From IMG/VR virus record IMGVR_UViG_3300024239_000013, positions 62,001 through 126,000 of that record: a stretch of 64,000 nt of DNA; one strand, 5' to 3'. Below, in pieces: positions 2,169-63,217 of this stretch. A program made the translations under genes and the position numbers. Within the stretch, counting starts at the first letter, position 1; the number at the start of each line of letters is the position of its first letter. The notes under the pieces were generated by a model. It did no database searches and was not told where the DNA came from. It was given only the letters and a program-made list of their open reading frames with translations.

Positions 2169-4064
2169 TTATTTTTTGTCTTTCTTTTCTGATTTATCAT
2201 CTTCTGACGAATCTTTCATAATATCTTTCTTTTGTGATTTTTCTTGAATTTGTTTTAAAAGCTCCATTCCGAGTAATCCTGAAATTGGTCCATTTCCAAC
2301 ATCGTTACCAGAGATTAAAATTTCTGGGATAATTTTAATTCCATTTGTACCAATCATTTCAGTAACTTTTAATTTTCCGAAATTATCTTCTCCCATAGCT
2401 TTAACCTGTTTCTCATAAGCTTCAGCAGTTGCTTTACCGATAGCTGAGATTTTAGATGCCTCAGCATCGCCGGTTAATTTAATCTGGGCAGCTTCAGCTT
2501 CAGCCATTAGTTTCTTAGCTTTGGATTCAGCTCCAGCTTTTAACTCAAGAGCTTTAGCTTCTCCTTCTGATTTTTTAACAGCAGCTTCAGCTTCACGTTG
2601 TGAGATTTCTACCGATTGCTGAGCTGATACCATTTGACCTTGCATATTTGCTAATGCTTTTGCTGATTCTAGTGTCTTACGTTGGTCTTGTGCTTTTCTC
2701 TGGGTTTCGAATGTAATCTCCTCTTCCTGAGCAATCTTACGATCTGTTAAGGTTTTCATTAAAGATTCTGGCGGAACAATATCACCGATCAAGGTATCTA
2801 CTGCATGAACGTTATATTCTTCTAGTACTTTAGAAATACTTACTTTAGCTGCGTCTTGACGTTGTTGTCTTGTAGATAAAAATGAAATAACATCTGAATC
2901 TTGAGCGGAGTTTCTGAAATAGTTCCCGATTGTAGGTTCAAGAACCTGAGATACTAAATTTGACATAGATCCAAATCTTGCAATAACTTTAGGTGCTTCG
3001 TTAGAAGGAATGTGAATAATCTGAGATACGTCTAGATTGAATGGAAATCCATCTTTAGATCTAACCGTAATTGTGCTCAGGTTTTTATCCAGATCATGAG
3101 ATTCCGAACGAGCTGTAGCCCAATTGAGTACTAGGTTTGTTGTAGGAACTATTTCAATTTTCTGAGTATATGGATTGATAGCGTATTTACCTGGATCTAG
3201 TGGAGTTATCCATACGCCCCTTTGCCCTTTCTTAACTATATTTCCGTGTTTAAATCCATCACCAGTTGTGTCTTCTCCTTCCTCCCCTACATAAGAAATA
3301 ACTACACCGACGTGACCGATTGGAATCTGAGTCATTTCTCTCTTTTCAATTTCTACTGCCCAGGGGTTTAGTGAATATGATCCTGCTTGAATAACCTGTA
3401 CCTGTAAACCTCTCTGACCTCCGTTTTCTAAGAATTTATCAAAATTTTGAAAGTTGTTGTGTCCTTCAATAGGTGAACCTGCAATAGATCCAGGAGATAG
3501 CGGGATACCGTCTAATGCTGTTACCACTCCGACCATTCCATCTTCAATGTAAGTAATGTCTGCGATAAGAACATCAAATAAAAATTTATTGATACGATAC
3601 ACCCCGTTATTAAGATATCCTACTTGTTTACCCCTTTGCCCCCCTTTTGTCAAGAAAGCCCTACTGTCTTGGAAATTATCACAGTCTATATTTCTTGCTA
3701 AAATTGACCCAGTTGGAAGAGGTAACCCGTCTTTAGCAGAAAGTAATCCAATTTTACCTCTAGGTATTTCTGTTAAATCTGCCATTTCAACTGAGTATTG
3801 CCAAATCCAATATCCCCAATATAAACCGGGTGCTAAAGTGTCTGCCTGAAACCCTGCTTCTCCATTAAGAGCGATGATTTTTCCGTCGGGTAATGATTTA
3901 TTTTCACCAAAAAGAACAAATTTCTTGGTAACGAGACCAATTTTATCTTCTGGGATTATAACCATACCAAAGAAAACCCTCAGTGTAAATTTATAAAATA
4001 CAATCAATAATAATGGAACTAATACCCATCCGAATTTTAATAATAAGCTTAATGCTAAATCCAT
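2169..4064 (-). CDS. SPFH/Band-7/flotillin-like membrane protein
   Basis: N-terminal TM, repeated GQRG units, ITVRSKDGFPFNLDVSQ SPFH core, AEA-rich coiled coil. Confidence 0.85.
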   Translation of the reverse strand: MDLALSLLLKFGWVLVPLLLIVFYKFTLRVFFGMVIIPEDKIGLVTKKFVLFGENKSLPDGKIIALNGEAGFQADTLAPGLYWGYWIWQYSVEMADLTEIPRGKIGLLSAKDGLPLPTGSILARNIDCDNFQDSRAFLTKGGQRGKQVGYLNNGVYRINKFLFDVLIADITYIEDGMVGVVTALDGIPLSPGSIAGSPIEGHNNFQNFDKFLENGGQRGLQVQVIQAGSYSLNPWAVEIEKREMTQIPIGHVGVVISYVGEEGEDTTGDGFKHGNIVKKGQRGVWITPLDPGKYAINPYTQKIEIVPTTNLVLNWATARSESHDLDKNLSTITVRSKDGFPFNLDVSQIIHIPSNEAPKVIARFGSMSNLVSQVLEPTIGNYFRNSAQDSDVISFLSTRQQRQDAAKVSISKVLEEYNVHAVDTLIGDIVPPESLMKTLTDRKIAQEEEITFETQRKAQDQRKTLESAKALANMQGQMVSAQQSVEISQREAEAAVKKSEGEAKALELKAGAESKAKKLMAEAEAAQIKLTGDAEASKISAIGKATAEAYEKQVKAMGEDNFGKLKVTEMIGTNGIKIIPEILISGNDVGNGPISGLLGMELLKQIQEKSQKKDIMKDSSEDDKSEKKDKK

Positions 4065-15987: not shown

Positions 15988-16006
15988 TTTTTCAATTTTT
16001 TAGCGA

Positions 16007-16684
16007 TTAATTATGACCGAAATCTATTTCGGCTATATCGTCTATTGTGTATCCTTCATCATCATTCCCTGATGCATTAACCTCAACAACATATTTATTA
16101 TTATCTGAGGTTTTTGTGCTGTTATAGATAAAATAGTAATAAGCTAGTTCACCAGGATTATACATTTTCATGATTTCTACTTTTTCAAATTCTCCAGATA
16201 CTAATCCAGTCTTATTCCAAAATAACATTTCTATTACATCATCATCTATAGATTTAATATAAACATCCTTCATTACCCTAGGATATAAAGAAGAGATTTC
16301 CATCGTAGAAGATGTGCAGTTTATATTAACATAGACTTCTGATTCTTTGTATTTTAATTTAAGTACCACATCAAAGCCATATTCCAATTCATCTATGGTA
16401 CGTCTAGCTCTCATCTTACCTATAACTGAGAGTTTTTTTAATATATCTTCGGAAAGCTTTGGGTATGTAGATATTATATTTTTATTATCTTTAATAAAAT
16501 TGTAAAAATCTTCAAAGGATAAATTCTCGAATGGTTCTTCTATTCTAATATCATAGAATCTCAAACCAGATCTCCAATATTTTAATTTTATAGGTTTGCC
16601 TGTTAAGTTTGAAATCTCGTCTATTAATGATTCCAAGCTATCTGTGGGTTGGGTAAAATCTTCAAATATTTTAATTCTTCTCAT
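16007..16684 (-). CDS. hypothetical protein (MRRIKIFEDF start)
   Basis: ATG at 16684 follows a GATAAATA box. Confidence 0.55.
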   Translation of the reverse strand: MRRIKIFEDFTQPTDSLESLIDEISNLTGKPIKLKYWRSGLRFYDIRIEEPFENLSFEDFYNFIKDNKNIISTYPKLSEDILKKLSVIGKMRARRTIDELEYGFDVVLKLKYKESEVYVNINCTSSTMEISSLYPRVMKDVYIKSIDDDVIEMLFWNKTGLVSGEFEKVEIMKMYNPGELAYYYFIYNSTKTSDNNKYVVEVNASGNDDEGYTIDDIAEIDFGHN

Positions 16685-16857
16685 GATATATTTATCCAAT
16701 TCCTATGATCTTTTTTCCACGTACAAGAACTTTTTAGAATATCTATATTGTCCAATTCTGATTCCCGAGTATTCTTTGTGTCTTTGTGTGATCTGGTGAC
16801 CCAATGTACTCCCTCCTGTAATAATTATTTTCACAATTTTATTTTAAATAAGATAAC

Positions 16858-17595
16858 TTATTTCTCCTTTAGCAAGAATGAATTAGAAATGGATTTGAAA
16901 GATATTGTTTTATCCTTGTTTCTAATAACCACTCCTTCTCTCTCCGCTCCATTGTATAGTTTTGATTTACCCTCTGCGTAAAGAAGAATTTCATCGACAG
17001 TTTCTGGTAGGCTATAATTTTCCTCGAGCACAGGAACAAGTTCAAGTGGTTTATCGTCATTATTAACTTTAGATAGGAATTCCCTCATTTCATCTAATCC
17101 TAGATATTCTTGAGTGTCAATATTGAAAATATTGAAAACTCTAAGAGTATGCCCTTTTATTTTATATGGATTCCCTTGAATTCCTTCACCGATAAGTTCA
17201 CCCTGGATTGCGTAATTTTGATTAAGAGATCCTAGTTTTTCTGCTATCTTTAGCTCTCTAGCAACCTTCCAGAATGTATTTTCTTTTTTGGTTCTTTCGA
17301 CACCATCTTCACCAATGATAGTACCAGGTACAAATTCTCCAGGATCCGCTAACTCAAGGTTTCTTGAACAGACTCCGAAAACTCCGTCTTTTAAATAGAA
17401 GGTTGCGGAACTTCCGTCTAGTTTTTCAGTCACATAAAACCTTTCAGTCTTCCAGCCCTCGTACTCTTTGGTTAGATTTTGACAGTTATGTACTAAAATA
17501 TCGTTTGCATAGAAGTTATGAACTTTATCTACTTCAATGTCATAACGTTTTGATTCATGATTTATCTTCTTAATAGATTTAATTTTATCTAACAT
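16858..17595 (-). CDS. split-intein C-part (37 aa, 17595-17485) fused to RNA ligase catalytic domain
   Basis: YDIEV..HNFYANDILVHN|C splice junction; EKLDGSS, IQGELIG, REGVV, FKSIS ligase motifs. Confidence 0.92.
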   Translation of the reverse strand: MLDKIKSIKKINHESKRYDIEVDKVHNFYANDILVHNCQNLTKEYEGWKTERFYVTEKLDGSSATFYLKDGVFGVCSRNLELADPGEFVPGTIIGEDGVERTKKENTFWKVARELKIAEKLGSLNQNYAIQGELIGEGIQGNPYKIKGHTLRVFNIFNIDTQEYLGLDEMREFLSKVNNDDKPLELVPVLEENYSLPETVDEILLYAEGKSKLYNGAEREGVVIRNKDKTISFKSISNSFLLKEK

Positions 17596-18557
17596 AGTAT
17601 TTCTTTTAAAAGGTTATAGATTTCTTCGTTTGTCATATTATTAATATCACTCTCCCAAAAATAGTGAACTGTATATCCTTTAGATTCTATAAGCTTACGT
17701 TTCCGATTGTCTTTCTTCCAAACATCCTTTGCTAAAAGACCATCTAAAAGAACGTCAGACTCTTTATAGAACTTAGGATTAGCATGCCAAAAGTCACCTT
17801 GAACTTCTATGATAACTTTATTCTTAAATATCAGATCCCAGTTATATGCATATAGAAATCCGTTTGCCGTATATTCTACATCTAATTGATTTAGTATTGT
17901 CTGAATTCTGATCTCTTGACTACTTACATAATTTATATTAGCTCTTGCTTTTTCTGTCATCCGCCTGCGTTCATCCGCCGTCATTTTAGATATTCTTTTC
18001 TTCTGTGACTCTCCAATCTTCACCGAAACACCTGGGATTTGAGAAGGATTATAAACGCTATCTCCGTATTTTTTGATAAGAGTATCTCTTATAGATTCTT
18101 GGGCCTTTTCATAGTCTATATGTGACTGTGCAACCTTCCGTATCTTTGGGTTGCAGAAGTTGTTCTCATATCCAAAGTTCTTTAGGAACGTCTCTTTCTT
18201 TTTTTTCTTGATGGCTTTAGCCTGTGATGGATTCTTAACCCCAAACCGTTTCATATTAGTAGACTCAATCTTATCTTTATAAACCTTGGTCTTTTTGCTT
18301 TCGCTATTAGTTCGTTTAATCCCAAGTAATTCGATATAATTTGCAAATGAAACCCCATACATTTCTTTAAGATCAGAGACATTATAACCTTCAAGATATA
18401 GATCCTTTACCGTATCGAAGGTTCTATCTTCTATTTCTATTTGAGATTTAATGTAGTTTACCTCATTTGTTAATTTATTAATGTTGTGATGTCTATTAAT
18501 GTGTATTTTTAATATGTTCGTTTGATTGAATTCTTTATTGCAGATAATACACCTCAT
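17589..18557 (-). mobile_element. free-standing putative homing endonuclease (C2H2 finger, FGVKNPSQ-type repeats, Vsr/DUF559-like nuclease)
   Basis: CIIC..HINRHH; IEVQGDFWHANP..KKD..K..GYTVHYFWE; lies between the intein halves. Confidence 0.82.
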
Positions 18558-18631
18558 AATAAGTTTCCTTTTATTTATATATCTCTTATTTATATAAAAA
18601 ACAATAAATAATCAGTCTTTTTAATAACTTT

Positions 18632-19441
18632 TTAGGTTATTTTAACGGTTTCATTACCTAAAAGATCTCTAACTTCTCTGAAGCATTTTAATTCAGGAAG
18701 CCAAATACGATGATTTCCAGTAGCTTTAATAGTCTTACCAGACTCTAGTTCAATCATGTACCAATCGTTATTATTCTTTTGAATAGAATGACTGTTAATG
18801 GAGTTCATTTCATTTTCATCAGTTATAGTATTGTATGATAGAACCTTACCTGTATACTTTGACTCACAGATTTCCTTGATAGTCATTGGACCGTCTTCTG
18901 TGTTAACAATAACATCTTCAGACAAGCATCTTTCTTCATCAGTCTTTCTGATAAATGACGGGAAGTATCCCTTAACCTTTCCTGCTAGCTGTGCTGGAAT
19001 AGGAGGTTCGTATTTTATGATTCCGAGAAGATCTGTTACATCTAGACCCTCTTCTATAACAATAGAACCACCAGTCCCCAATTGTAATTTGTCTCCTTGT
19101 GGTTGTTTGCTAATTCCAACGACCATTTCTTTTTCACTTCTCAAAGTAGATAAAGGCAATAAAAGCCCTTGACTTAATTCTTGTCTAAGTCTAATAGTCT
19201 TTAATCTAAATCCTTCAATGTCCCCCATTTTTTTATATGAGGATTTTCTTAGAAATTCGAATTTTTCATCAATTGGTAAGAATGAATCAACTTCACAATA
19301 AATAGCCAATTCTCCCTCCTTATATTCTCCAATTCTAGTTATAACTTTCCATCCACCAATATGACAAATCTCAAGTGAGTCTGCATTGGGATGTTTAGTT
19401 ATTTTATCAATTCTCTTTACTGATGCTAATTTTCTTTCCAT
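18632..19441 (-). CDS. RNA ligase (DRB0094-type) N-terminal part fused to split-intein N-part (98 aa, 18928-18635)
   Basis: RKLASV..HPNADSLE..GW, LRQELSQGL, FPSFIRKTDEER|CLSED; intein block B ATGNH. Confidence 0.92.
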   Translation of the reverse strand: MERKLASVKRIDKITKHPNADSLEICHIGGWKVITRIGEYKEGELAIYCEVDSFLPIDEKFEFLRKSSYKKMGDIEGFRLKTIRLRQELSQGLLLPLSTLRSEKEMVVGISKQPQGDKLQLGTGGSIVIEEGLDVTDLLGIIKYEPPIPAQLAGKVKGYFPSFIRKTDEERCLSEDVIVNTEDGPMTIKEICESKYTGKVLSYNTITDENEMNSINSHSIQKNNNDWYMIELESGKTIKATGNHRIWLPELKCFREVRDLLGNETVKIT

Positions 19442-19444
19442 CTT

Positions 19445-19906
19445 TTAATCTTTTTTATTTAATATTGTATGGATTGTTTCCTTTATTATTTCATTATATG
19501 GAAGCCAGGCTTCTGACAATTTTGCTTTGGTGTAATTTTTAGATCCCCTACAATCTCCATCTTTAGAAGGTTTAAGATCTCTGCACTGAGCAGGTCTTTC
19601 TTCAAATGACATCGTGCATCCTTTATCTGTTAAAAATATACACTCTCCTCCCCAAGAAGGATCAAGTACTTTACCTAAGGATTTTTTAGTCTGTGGACGT
19701 AGAAAGTAAAATGTTATATCATCATATTCGGGATTTTCTGTAGGATTACCTTCCCAGTAATCAAATTGATATCCCTTCTCGTACATTTTCTCCAGAGAAT
19801 CGACAGTAATTTCTTTCATATCGTCAGGAGAAAGTATACCAGGAAGACTTTTACAACAACTTCCACACGATGAACAAATTGATATGTTTTCGTTATTTTC
19901 TATCAT
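19445..19906 (-). CDS. YkgJ-like CxxCxxCC cysteine-cluster protein
   Basis: CSSCGSCC, CIFL..GC..ERPAQCR. Confidence 0.8.
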   Translation of the reverse strand: MIENNENISICSSCGSCCKSLPGILSPDDMKEITVDSLEKMYEKGYQFDYWEGNPTENPEYDDITFYFLRPQTKKSLGKVLDPSWGGECIFLTDKGCTMSFEERPAQCRDLKPSKDGDCRGSKNYTKAKLSEAWLPYNEIIKETIHTILNKKD

Positions 19907-20233
19907 ATTTTTTAATTTATTAGATGTGACAGTTCTATATAGATATTAAAGTATCAACTATATTCTATTCAAAAAATAGGTTTAAAGAATCAATATCAGA
20001 TTCATTTATTATTATAAAATACTCTCATATATTAATTTTATACCCAAATTTACATTCAAATTACGGGATAAAAAAATATAGATATATAATTATTTTTTTA
20101 ATGGATCTTTTTAATTTGTCTAGATTACATTCTTTCGATGGACTGAAAGAAATAAATTAATTTGTAAAATATTATATGTCTAGTATAATTCTTATTTTTC
20201 GATATATAAAAAAATCATATATTTTTAGCAATA

Positions 20234-20812
20234 ATGAAATATCCAAAGAAGTATCTCACAGCAAATCCAAATGTAATGAAAAGAGAGATTAAAAAACACG
20301 GGGGAAAGGAAGACGACGATTCTTCCGCATACGGACCCTGGGATGCTGATTATAAAAGTAGAAAAGCTGGAAAGGGTAAACCGATTCCAACTAAACAGTC
20401 TAAATACACAAAAAAATACAAGGAACTCTTTGGAGAAAAAGAAAATTTTGAATCTAAAAACATACTAGATTTTGATGTGTTTAATCTACCAGACAATCTA
20501 TTTGAGGATATAATTATAGAAAATACTGAAATTACCGAAAAGGTTATTATGGAATCTTCGATGGAGAAAGATGGTCCTATATATAAGGCTTTAAAAAAGA
20601 AATCTGATAAAACTGGATTTCCTCTAAATATATTAAAAAAAGTTTGGTCTAGAGGGTATTCAGCCTGGAAAACCGGTCATATTCCTGGGACTACACCCCA
20701 GCAATGGGCTATGGCTAGAGTTAATTCTTTTGTTACTGGTGGTAAAACAACTAAAATGTCCGATAAGGCACTATATGACCAGGCAAAGAAAAACAAGAAA
20801 CAAAAAAGGTAG
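20234..20812 (+). CDS. conserved basic phage protein
   Basis: SKYTKKYKELFG and RGYSAWKTGH..QWAMARVNSF motifs; GATATATA box. Confidence 0.6.
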   Translation: MKYPKKYLTANPNVMKREIKKHGGKEDDDSSAYGPWDADYKSRKAGKGKPIPTKQSKYTKKYKELFGEKENFESKNILDFDVFNLPDNLFEDIIIENTEITEKVIMESSMEKDGPIYKALKKKSDKTGFPLNILKKVWSRGYSAWKTGHIPGTTPQQWAMARVNSFVTGGKTTKMSDKALYDQAKKNKKQKR

Positions 20813-27533: not shown

Positions 27534-28631
27534 CTAATCTTCTGTTTTATTCCAAAATGGTTTTTGATATTTGGGTCTTATCATTTTCCAGATTTTTTCT
27601 GAATAGTCATTCCCATCATAGAACATAAATAAAATACTTGTTATATCTCTATCTTGTTCTTTTGCCCATTCTGCAAATTCCTTCCTTCCTTTATCTTTTT
27701 CAAAATCTGGTCTTTTTTCAAAGAAGCTCTTGTAAATATCGTTTACTCTTTCCTCTATTGATGAATAGTTATATTTCAATTCTTTTATTATTTTCTTCAC
27801 CCAAAGATCAAATTCATCAGGAACCCTATCCAAAAAATTACCAAGATCCTGTTTATTTTTTAAGAGCTCCCAGATATCCACATTCGAGAAGTTTGTCAAT
27901 AGTCTATGTAATCTAACATATTCCTCGCCTTTTATTTTCATTCTGAATCCGGAAGAAAATCTAATAACGAAACCCTCGGAATTTGAAGATATTATTTTTT
28001 TAAGCTCTTTGTAATTATTAAGACCGTCATATTTTTTAACTACTTTAAACCCTATAGTTCCTAGAATACCCTGGTTTTTTAAGTTCATTAAGCTTTTTTC
28101 GTCAGAGTGAATATCATATTCATATCCATCTAAATTATCAATAACTGAAAGTAAAATGATATCCTCAAAATCATAGCTAACAACTATTCGATTTTCTGGG
28201 TAGATAATCTCGAATAAATAAGTGCAATCTTTCAACAAATCCTTATAATGATATTTCTCCAATATAGATCTTCCCCTTATCGCTTGCTCTGAAGTGAATG
28301 ATCCTTTTGTAGCAAAATGCCATTCCCCTTCGTAATTGAAAAGTATACCCAAGGATCCGTCCATCTTCTCGAAAACATCAAAATTTTCGTTCGGAATATC
28401 GCTAGAATCCAATTCTTCTAAATTAAAGAATTTAGGAAATGTCCTTGCAACGACATTTCCTTCCCTATCAAGAACCGTCCCTCTCATATTAAGAGTGATT
28501 TCATCCCACTCTTTAGAGAATTGGCACTCTCTTGAATAGTTATAAATATCCAAAGGTAATGATGGATGAGAATTTTTTTCTAAAAGACCTCTTTCAATAT
28601 AGGAATTGAGAATATTTATATCGTATTTCAT
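27534..28631 (-). CDS. T4 Rnl1-like RNA ligase
   Basis: FPKFFN, EKMDGSLG, FEII, EGFV, KIKGEEY. Confidence 0.88.
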   Translation of the reverse strand: MKYDINILNSYIERGLLEKNSHPSLPLDIYNYSRECQFSKEWDEITLNMRGTVLDREGNVVARTFPKFFNLEELDSSDIPNENFDVFEKMDGSLGILFNYEGEWHFATKGSFTSEQAIRGRSILEKYHYKDLLKDCTYLFEIIYPENRIVVSYDFEDIILLSVIDNLDGYEYDIHSDEKSLMNLKNQGILGTIGFKVVKKYDGLNNYKELKKIISSNSEGFVIRFSSGFRMKIKGEEYVRLHRLLTNFSNVDIWELLKNKQDLGNFLDRVPDEFDLWVKKIIKELKYNYSSIEERVNDIYKSFFEKRPDFEKDKGRKEFAEWAKEQDRDITSILFMFYDGNDYSEKIWKMIRPKYQKPFWNKTED

Positions 28632-61768: not shown

Positions 61769-63217
61769 TTAAAACCTTTTCAGAACATACATCTTTCTAC
61801 TTGCTCTTGTGTATGCAGTGTATTTTATTCTATTTCTCTCTATTATGTCTAGATTCATATCAATATCATCCTCGAGAACAAAAGTTGTGTTATATGTGCT
61901 TCCTTGTGATTTATGTGCTGTTATAGCATATGCATAATTAACATCTGCATAAGACCTTAGAAAATTGTAATAATCTAACCAGGATCTATCTTTACCTTTC
62001 TTTCTTATTGCTCTAAGTTTTAATATATTTGCAATCTTCTGGAATTCGATTTCACTGTCTTCGTGAAGTATTTTAATGGTTTCTTCTTTATGCTCATCAG
62101 AATCGTCTAAATATTCAACAACAGTTTTATAATACTTCAATTCAATCTCTAACGGTTCTGCGTCTGGATGGTCGTCAATGACAAATCTTCTGGATTCGGT
62201 TTTTGTTTCATATTTAATCACCGAGAATTCATCGTTTGTGTTGAATACGATCTCCCTTTCTTCAATAATCGGATTATTAGCTATTAGTTTTTCCCCCTTT
62301 AATATCTTAGATTTCTCTGACAATTCACCATATATAGCTTTTCTGATTATTCCATTCATTGTTGACACTGTCTTATTCCTCCAAGCTATCACCTTAGAAT
62401 ATTCAGAATCATTCGCAAATTTATCAGTTACGAAATACTCTTTTAACTTTTCAGAAAATCCCCTTCTTACCTCCGGAGAATTGAGATTTAAAAACTCAAC
62501 ACCCTCCCCATTTGAATTTACCTTAGAAATATTATCTATACTAAGTTTATTTGAATGTAATTCTTTTCTTATTATTACAGACGAATCTATTATTGCATTA
62601 CCTTCTTTCTGTCTCATTATCTGATTAAGCTGAAGGGTCTTGATTCTATAGTGGTCCGCTAATTCTTCTCTGAAAGGTATACAGTCCGGCTTACCTACTG
62701 GTGGTATCTGAGCAGGATCTCCCATGCATATAATTTTAATCTTATCCCTGTATTTTAATATCTCGTGAAATAAATCGTCATTTAGCATAGAAACCTCGTC
62801 GATGATAAGTAGTCTAACTGTTTTTATCTGAGGCTTAAAGTCCCCTTGATTTACGAATTCTTGTTTGCCATCATTTGTTATTTTTTCAGTCAACCCAAGC
62901 AACTTATGTATTGTTTGAAATGTTACTCTACTATTTCTTAATCCGCTAGTTTTCTTAATAACTCTAACAGATTTATTTGTAGGTCCAGTAACTGCTATTT
63001 TAAACCAATTATGTTTAGGATGTATCACTTCAAGAGCATATCTAACCAGTAAACTCACACAGTAAGTTTTACCGGTTCCTGCCCAACCTTTAAGAACATA
63101 AACACTATCGTCGGATTTATCATATATGAAATCCCTTAATTCTTCAAAAGCTTTCTTTTGATCTGAATTAAGGGTTTCTAGATTTATTATTGGTTTTTTG
63201 CTTTTAAATTTAGACAT
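61769..63217 (-). CDS. dda: Dda/RecD-like SF1B DNA helicase
   Basis: GWAGTGKT, IIDEVSM, GDPAQIPPV, RQ, YAITAHKSQGSTY, YTAYTRA. Confidence 0.88.
   Translation of the reverse strand: MSKFKSKKPIINLETLNSDQKKAFEELRDFIYDKSDDSVYVLKGWAGTGKTYCVSLLVRYALEVIHPKHNWFKIAVTGPTNKSVRVIKKTSGLRNSRVTFQTIHKLLGLTEKITNDGKQEFVNQGDFKPQIKTVRLLIIDEVSMLNDDLFHEILKYRDKIKIICMGDPAQIPPVGKPDCIPFREELADHYRIKTLQLNQIMRQKEGNAIIDSSVIIRKELHSNKLSIDNISKVNSNGEGVEFLNLNSPEVRRGFSEKLKEYFVTDKFANDSEYSKVIAWRNKTVSTMNGIIRKAIYGELSEKSKILKGEKLIANNPIIEEREIVFNTNDEFSVIKYETKTESRRFVIDDHPDAEPLEIELKYYKTVVEYLDDSDEHKEETIKILHEDSEIEFQKIANILKLRAIRKKGKDRSWLDYYNFLRSYADVNYAYAITAHKSQGSTYNTTFVLEDDIDMNLDIIERNRIKYTAYTRASRKMYVLKRF

Follow-up and report, generated by a model that had tools for sequence, protein, structure and literature searches.

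Few split inteins are known from nature, and fractured-gene loci are the source of the fastest protein-ligation tools (gp41-1, NrdJ-1 and IMPDH-1). In such loci, as described from ocean metagenomes by Dassa et al. in 2009 (gp41-1, NrdJ-1, IMPDH-1, NrdA-2 and DNA ligase among them), the host gene is divided over two open reading frames (ORFs) by a class 1 intein that is split at the usual endonuclease insertion point into an N-terminal part (IntN) and a short C-terminal part (IntC), and a free-standing gene for a Vsr-like endonuclease lies on the same strand between the halves (PMC2677866). The recorded hosts of these phage-derived elements are gp41 helicase, IMPDH, DnaE, NrdA, NrdJ, DNA ligase, terminase and one unknown protein; in most of the loci the endonuclease gene is preceded by a hairpin with TATAAATA and its 3' end overlaps the IntC ORF (PMC2677866). 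Here we analyze a locus of this kind in a 64,000-nucleotide stretch of viral DNA (IMG/VR UViG 3300024239_000013; the whole stretch is called the window below), where three consecutive minus-strand ORFs, read from the sequence at 16858-19441, encode the N-terminal half of an RNA ligase, an endonuclease and the C-terminal half of the ligase. The best explanation, which we hold to be very probably correct, is a fractured gene, in which a split intein and the endonuclease gene form a cassette and the two ligase halves are rejoined by protein trans-splicing.

The arrangement itself is already known, and an earlier note on this DNA had rightly named it for the gp41, NrdJ/NrdA, IMPDH and DnaE genes, all of which are listed in PMC2677866. 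The window locus shares with the described loci the two-ORF host gene, the split class 1 intein broken at the usual endonuclease insertion point, a short IntC (37 amino acids), the same-strand, free-standing Vsr-like endonuclease gene between the halves, the phage origin, the hairpin with TATAAATA before the endonuclease gene and a stop/start overlap (7 nt, compared with 6-69 bp reported). It differs from them in its host, an ATP-dependent Rnl5 RNA ligase that is outside their eight host types, in its IntN of 98 amino acids, which is weakly similar to that of NrdJ-1, and in the position of the hairpin, which lies upstream of the ribosome-binding-like site without covering it. The other RNA repair ligase known as an intein host is RtcB, in archaea and actinobacteriophages (bioRxiv 10.1101/2025.01.02.630785), a GTP-dependent enzyme of unrelated fold, and RtcB-type enzymes are the only RNA ligase hosts in the 2025 actinobacteriophage intein survey (bioRxiv 10.1101/2025.01.02.630785). 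A full-text literature search, with many subscription papers and the InBase tables outside its coverage, returned no report of an intein in Rnl5 or any other ATP-dependent RNA ligase. The Rnl5 ligase thus appears not to have been described as a host gene, and the earlier note's impression that an RNA ligase host would be new fits the surveys, which report only RtcB-type RNA ligases.

The fractured Rnl5 ligase gene

The N-half ORF (19441..18632, minus strand, as are all features of the locus) encodes 269 amino acids, which consist of a 171-codon N-extein (18929..19441) and the IntN (18632..18928; 98 codons and a TAA stop). The N-extein, which ends in KTDEER, spans the OB-fold N domain, a linker and the first part of the nucleotidyltransferase domain; the first residue of the IntN, Cys1, is encoded at 18928-18926, and its block B reads TGNH. 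The C-half ORF (17595..16858; 245 amino acids) begins with the IntC (17485..17595; 37 codons, terminal VHN), which is followed by the C-extein (16858..17484; 208 codons and a stop) with a cysteine at position +1 and the nucleotidyltransferase core, including motifs I (KLDG), III, IV and V. The two halves are on separate polypeptides, with a stop codon, a 74-nt spacer (18558..18631) and the endonuclease gene (18557..17589; 322 amino acids) between them, and the ATG of the C-half overlaps the stop of the endonuclease gene in the 7-nt sequence ATGTTAG. The three-ORF architecture in the earlier note, with its lengths and its Cys1, TGNH and HN/Cys+1 residues, is thus found exactly as it was described. 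Its proposal that splicing would restore KTDEER-CQNL upstream of KLDG in a product of about 379 residues also agrees with the sequence, as the exteins abut exactly and the predicted spliced ligase has 171 + 208 = 379 amino acids, with the KLDG lysine of motif I at +21 in the C-extein.

The identity of the host gene follows from complementary matches of the two halves to the same family models. In Pfam, the N-extein matches PF21189 (PHA02142 OB-fold domain; E 3.3e-34) and the C-extein matches RNA_ligase PF09414 (E 2e-29); in TIGR02306 (RNA ligase, DRB0094 family), the N-half covers profile positions 2-149 and the C-half positions 144-341, the halves scoring 112.7 and 66.2 bits on their complementary parts. 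The closest uninterrupted relative (P0023, 380 amino acids) reaches 188.9 bits, above the TIGR02306 cut-off of 151.15 bits, and matches the Naegleria gruberi RNA ligase NgrRnl (PDB 5cot) over its full length with an E-value of 1.6e-66; by these sequence matches, therefore, the host gene is an Rnl5-type, nick-sealing RNA ligase. Uninterrupted relatives of 357-382 amino acids are abundant. Because the NCBIfam cut-offs for inteins are passed (see below) and the halves fit complementary parts of TIGR02306, a chance resemblance to a split-intein ligase is excluded, and the fractured gene is, as judged from sequence, real. The three-ORF layout is also seen in the related loci L045/L048, L046/L049, L050 and L062. 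The whole arrangement spans single contigs of independent samples (6047 nt in wastewater run X2, 8031 nt in river run X8, and L062), which excludes an assembly artefact.

Like the Rnl5 enzymes NgrRnl and DraRnl (PDB 5cot; PMC7261155, PMC1807946), the predicted ligase combines an N-terminal OB domain with a nucleotidyltransferase domain, and the active-site residues named for NgrRnl in PMC7261155 (Lys170, Asp172, Glu227, Phe248, Glu312 and Lys326) all have equivalents in the C-extein when aligned to 5cot. Unlike those enzymes, the window gene is broken between the equivalents of NgrRnl Arg149 and Val150, 21 residues before the motif I lysine (counted from NgrRnl Lys170), its mature protein would have a cysteine, not isoleucine or valine, after the arginine, and the phage proteins are about 40 residues longer. 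The N-extein aligns to NgrRnl as far as Arg149, a residue that contacts the ATP gamma phosphate; the R149A mutant retains 15% of the nick-sealing activity, and the ribose is touched by Thr145 of the same KTDxER motif (PMC7261155). Neither half should be active alone, since the break parts the OB domain and two ATP contacts (the equivalents of Thr145 and Arg149) from the Lys-AMP core. That the intein adjoins an ATP-contacting arginine, and in relatives lies inside the lysine-adenylylation motif, supports the rule that inteins reside at the most conserved functional sites.

The insertion is exact. In P0023, L002-L007 and many other uninterrupted alleles, KT[DE]EER-IQN is read continuously over the junction, with no residues lost or gained, so that the comparison with intein-free alleles suggested in the earlier note bears out its reading. 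Of 170 uninterrupted alleles, 111 have Ile directly behind the arginine, 47 have Val, six Cys, five Ala and one Leu; all split alleles have Cys there. The uninterrupted alleles P0089, P0094, P0109, P0246, P0249 and P0266, in which a cysteine directly follows KTD[EQ]ER, may bear the trace of an intein that was lost precisely, or may be pre-adapted to its invasion.

The split intein and its mobile cassette

Both parts of the intein are recognized by NCBIfam models, the IntN by intein_Nterm (TIGR01445; 33.1 bits on N-half residues 172-246, cut-off 24.5 bits) and the IntC by intein_Cterm (TIGR01443; 36.1 bits on C-half residues 18-38, cut-off 15.6 bits). The residues of a class 1 intein are present: Cys1 (Cys172 of the N-half), TGNH at IntN positions 70-73, and VHN followed by Cys at C-half residues 35-38. 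The IntC resembles the C-terminal ends of the gp41-1 intein (PDB 6qaz; E 5e-4), as had been proposed, and, slightly more closely, of the NrdJ-1 intein (8ubs; E 8e-5), and the match of the IntN to 8ubs is weak (E 0.005). Of 138 related IntN sequences, which are down to 26% identical to that of the window, 100% retain Cys1 and 99% each retain Thr70 and His73, and all 13 related C-halves have an IntC of 36-37 amino acids that ends in HN and is followed by Cys. Relative to L048, nonsynonymous divergence (dN) is 0.24 for the IntN, 0.15 for the IntC and 0.31 for the endonuclease, with synonymous divergence (dS) saturated, so that the comparison of the two is valid qualitatively only. The residue conservation and the dN pattern together fit selection for splicing chemistry and not for mere docking.

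Structure prediction indicates that the two intein parts bind. When the IntN and the IntC, each with five extein residues, were modeled together, the interaction score ipSAE was 0.70 in three runs, as opposed to 0.00 for the best of three controls; 51 of 78 solved complexes and two of 108 mismatched pairs score as high.

Comparison of alleles marks the cassette as mobile. Between the window and L062, which comes from another sample, the tract from 18946 to 17450 shows 13 mismatches in 1497 nt (99.1% identity), whereas the ligase exteins directly outside it are about 50-75% identical and the neighboring genes do not align (in L062, a cREC phosphoesterase gene lies downstream and a PolyA_pol-family nucleotidyltransferase gene about 4.5 kb upstream). 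This recently transferred tract (17450..18946) consists of the cassette, that is, IntN, spacer, endonuclease gene and IntC, together with 18 nt of the N-extein and 35 nt of the C-extein, including the Cys+1 codon. L061, an allele that lacks the intein, matches the joined window exteins at 95-100% identity over most of the gene, but identity falls to 55-75% in a stretch that begins about 45 nt before the insertion point and reaches 280 nt past it, as would be expected had adjacent extein DNA come in with the cassette. Invaded and empty alleles occur in a single sample: in the river DNA run X8, a contig of the invaded form (depth about 30) is accompanied by a minor contig (depth about 6) that departs from the window exactly at 18929 and encodes EER-IQNLTENYNE, as does an empty allele. 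The metatranscriptome library X15 contains the cassette region 17306-19015 at 98-99% identity, and a contig of that library (record 13) departs from the window at 19015 into a diverged ligase N-extein. A cassette that is 99% identical in ligase genes of about 50-75% identity, the coexistence of invaded and empty alleles in one sample and the diverged tract at the site would together constitute an unusually clear natural record of homing.

Two other departures were seen in the split-form contig of X8, where 932 other letters take the place of 48 nt between window positions 16762 and 16811, just downstream of the ligase gene, and where a diverged patch of 151 nt, unchanged in length, lies within the C-extein (window 17208-17360); these point to further mosaic recombination. 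In the small 2014 runs X10, X11 and X14, which are labeled with single organisms, about half of the sampled words are present, and a 2542-nt contig of X10 covers the C-half, the endonuclease gene and the IntN at about 98% identity; these runs could represent a culture with the window phage or a relative.

The putative homing endonuclease (17589..18557) is free-standing. It has a C2H2-like zinc finger at its N terminus, then a helical region (DUF7487) and, at about residues 210-322, a C-terminal Vsr-like (EDxHD) nuclease domain. As a single sequence, it yields weak matches to DUF7487, DUF559, Vsr and, with E 0.013, to the structure 3r3p (Pfam, NCBIfam and PDB searches). Much stronger hits, to the catalytic domain of I-Bth0305I (3r3p; E 1.5e-8) and to Escherichia coli Vsr (1cw0; E 9.6e-4), came from a profile built on six homologs that related loci encode. 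In an AlphaFold2 model with a mean predicted local distance difference test (pLDDT) score of 73.9, and of 80-94 in the C-terminal domain, Foldseek found the best PDB folds to be 3r3p (E 6.4e-5, TM 0.76-0.78 over the target) and then 1cw0. The invariant residues are D241, E251, D255, H258, D283 and E302, with an FWH motif at 256-258, and D241, H258 and D283 align with Asp51, His69 and Asp97, the catalytic residues named for E. coli Vsr in PMC2677866. By profile and fold, the endonuclease therefore belongs to the Vsr-like EDxHD family, whose original prediction came from fractured genes (PMC2677866) and for which activity was shown in the case of I-Bth0305I (PMC3239194). The window protein and I-Bth0305I (PDB 3r3p; PMC3239194) both consist of several domains, of which the nuclease is the C-terminal one, and both keep the Vsr-type Asp/His/Asp equivalents; they differ in that I-Bth0305I lies in a recA group I intron, whereas the window gene is free-standing within a split intein, and in the N-terminal part of the window protein, which consists of the C2H2-like finger and DUF7487.

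The A+T-rich spacer located 5' of the endonuclease gene contains a hairpin, two TATAAATA motifs (18594-18587 and 18579-18572) and, after them, the ribosome-binding-like site AAAGGAAA. A 121-nt stretch in this region folds at -21.8 kcal/mol (z -3.3); upstream of the endonuclease gene in related loci, the hairpin is strong in L050 (z -5.6) and weak or absent in L048 and L051. A regulatory function of the hairpin and of the TATAAATA motifs, possibly including late-promoter control, is suggested by analogy with the described loci.

Proposed protein splicing and its alternatives

On the basis of these data, the ligase halves most likely rejoin as protein. The N-half and the C-half would be translated separately, the C-half from a start codon that overlaps the endonuclease stop, and the IntN (98 amino acids) and IntC (37 amino acids) would associate and splice in trans, tying Arg171 to Cys+1 and yielding the 379-residue ligase with KTDEER-CQNL. 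During co-infection, the endonuclease would presumably cut intein-free ligase alleles near the KTDEER/IQN codons, and repair from the invaded allele would copy the cassette along with the Cys+1 codon and short stretches of flanking extein. Several points weigh against this account. The Pfam Intein_splicing model matches both intein parts below its gathering score (27.4 and 29.7 compared with 35.8 bits), although the NCBIfam intein models pass, and the ipSAE score could reflect solved split inteins that the predictor had learned. The diverged tract in L061 could be due to ordinary recombination between ligase alleles and not to endonuclease-driven co-conversion. A scan of the window for promoter and terminator consensus sequences found 18 where 18.2 were expected, not above shuffles, and TATAAATA shows no enrichment there either (23 found, 18.5 expected). 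The cDNA libraries X2 and X15 may contain DNA, and presence in them is therefore no proof of transcription. More generally, we infer splicing, ligase activity, and endonuclease cleavage and its target from sequence and structure prediction.

The ligase could instead consist of two subunits that are docked non-covalently by the intein halves, or the locus could be a decaying, non-functional remnant, in either case with no protein splicing. The predicted binding of IntN and IntC is equally compatible with mere docking, the spliced product being a prediction, and the loss of the Rnl5 ligase might be tolerable given a second, Rnl1-like ligase at 27534..28631. Yet Cys1, Thr70/His73, the terminal Asn and Cys+1, all of which are dispensable for docking, are kept in very diverged copies, and Cys+1 stands where 158 of the 170 uninterrupted alleles have Ile or Val, a replacement that makes sense for splicing only; in addition, the catalytic motifs of the ligase are all intact, and the dN values are far below the saturated dS. 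We therefore consider docking or decay improbable.

Excision of the insert from the transcript, as a self-splicing intron that houses the endonuclease gene and has intein-like flanks by coincidence, appears still less probable, to the point of being hard to entertain. EDxHD endonucleases do occur in group I introns as well, as I-Bth0305I does in recA (PMC3239194, PMC2677866), and rare spliced transcripts would be compatible with the RNA libraries examined. But a search of 16000-20500 against Rfam returned nothing with E < 0.2 and, at a permissive threshold, two chance-level matches and no intron; the boundaries of the insert are in frame with Cys1 and HN/Cys+1, both flanks pass the NCBIfam intein models, and a natural contiguous mini-intein (P0227) occupies the same site in one reading frame. 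No contig in the cDNA runs X2 and X15 skips the insert; the sole skipping contig is that of the DNA run X8, which, as it has Ile at +1, represents an intein-free allele. RNA-level joining of the halves, the outcome that the earlier note had set against its own proposal, is thus given no support by the Rfam search or by the contigs of these libraries. Finally, the window is a metagenomic contig, and its arrangement could in principle reflect chimeric assembly or a sequencing artefact confined to one metagenome, but we regard this chance as negligible: the same arrangement is found on single contigs of independent samples and studies (X2 wastewater, X8 river, X10 and L062), more diverged versions are present in L048, L049 and L050, and in about a hundred N-half clusters the break falls at this very site. 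A fractured gene with trans-splicing of its protein products accounts for the locus best.

Relatives, distribution and phage context

A word-indexed search with the N-half revealed dozens of N-halves of 244-285 amino acids beside uninterrupted forms, and in an exhaustive HMMER search of 1.84 billion cluster representatives, many N-halves are among the 150 best matches. Homologs of the IntN are present in at least 137 protein clusters, in at least 102 of them after KTD[EQ]xR, the window site, and in at least 35 after KxDG, a second insertion site that lies inside motif I, 21 residues downstream of the first. The element is therefore not rare, being a single member of a very large family found in metagenomes. 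Some motif I IntN sequences, with up to 58% identity, resemble that of the window more closely than do many from its own site, where identity goes down to 26%. A quick tree of 131 IntN sequences calls for nine changes of site label; this suggests that the IntN has moved repeatedly between the two sites, and with a quick tree of only 100 columns it does not establish it.

All split copies seen come from metagenomes (subsurface, wastewater, river and soil). Against 50,697 GenBank phage records, blastn gave a single 99-bp match, in a ligase gene, and tblastn with the N-half found the ligase N domain in 307 records, none with a convincing IntN; the three tblastn matches with at least 80% coverage are from BUCT-ZZ01, which when opened proved to hold an uninterrupted 377-aa gene, and, twice, from Pseudomonas phage 201phi2-1, at 28.6% identity. 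A search of 185,579 species genomes gave 498 relatives, and of the best 80, seven run past residue 171; since all seven are uninterrupted genes of 330-379 amino acids, no split form was seen in cellular genomes among these best 80 of 498.

It is conceivable, with about equal weight for and against in our estimation, that the window element represents a very large population of split inteins of the gp41-1/NrdJ-1-like kind, so far undescribed and mobile at present, that is specialized on phage RNA-repair ligases. If so, this population would supply, as a natural library, many diverged split-intein pairs that may be fast and orthogonal to one another, and would be a clean system in which to measure EDxHD homing and co-conversion in the wild. 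The locus would add an ATP-dependent RNA ligase to the hosts of split inteins, along with more than 100 diverged IntN/IntC variants, and the Rnl5 variants could be screened for speed, orthogonality and junction tolerance (Arg at -1, Cys-Gln-Asn at +1). It would also tie the traffic of selfish elements to the RNA-repair modules of large phages.

Several related ligases depart from the window arrangement. P0227 (L064 4001-5620) is a 539-aa ligase with a contiguous mini-intein without endonuclease at the window site (PRTDQER / Cys ... VHN / CQNL). P0162, P0243, P0258 and P0172 are Rnl5 ligases of 503-707 amino acids with contiguous inteins at motif I (KLDG / Cys ... HN / Ser-Ser); three of them, of 690-707 amino acids, hold LAGLIDADG-like inserts, and the fourth has 503 amino acids. 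At L051 3095-5741 (contig of L008; IMG/VR 3300037067_012533), a different ligase is fractured, a PF09414 protein without an OB domain and with an HNH-like zinc-finger N terminus. The break there is directly after motif I (TEKLDGEN / Cys ... HN / Ser), with a related IntN, a gene for a 338-aa EDxHD endonuclease and an IntC, and an HD + AAA_33 kinase-like gene follows. In P0122 (394 amino acids), an HNH endonuclease domain is fused N-terminally to a ligase N-half that ends in a motif I-site IntN. P0074 (173 amino acids), an N-extein ORF that ends directly after KTDQER-Cys without an IntN, may be a decayed or frameshifted fractured allele.

The window belongs to a viral contig of 319 kb and therefore probably to a jumbo phage. 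It is common for large phages to encode several RNA ligases as back-ups in RNA repair, and their RNA-repair modules are thought to counter host RNase defences (PMC7824862). The second RNA ligase of the window (27534-28631, minus strand) is of the T4 Rnl1 type (PF09511, E 3.6e-18), and in L048 an Rnl1-like gene is located two ORFs after the split Rnl5 gene. Directly upstream of the N-half lies a gene for a PF03692 CxxCxxCC zinc- or iron-chelating domain protein (19445-19906, minus strand), with its stop 3 nt before the N-half start codon. Elsewhere in the window, also on the minus strand, are genes for a 631-aa SPFH/Band 7 domain protein (2169-4064) and a Dda/PIF1-like helicase (61769-63217).

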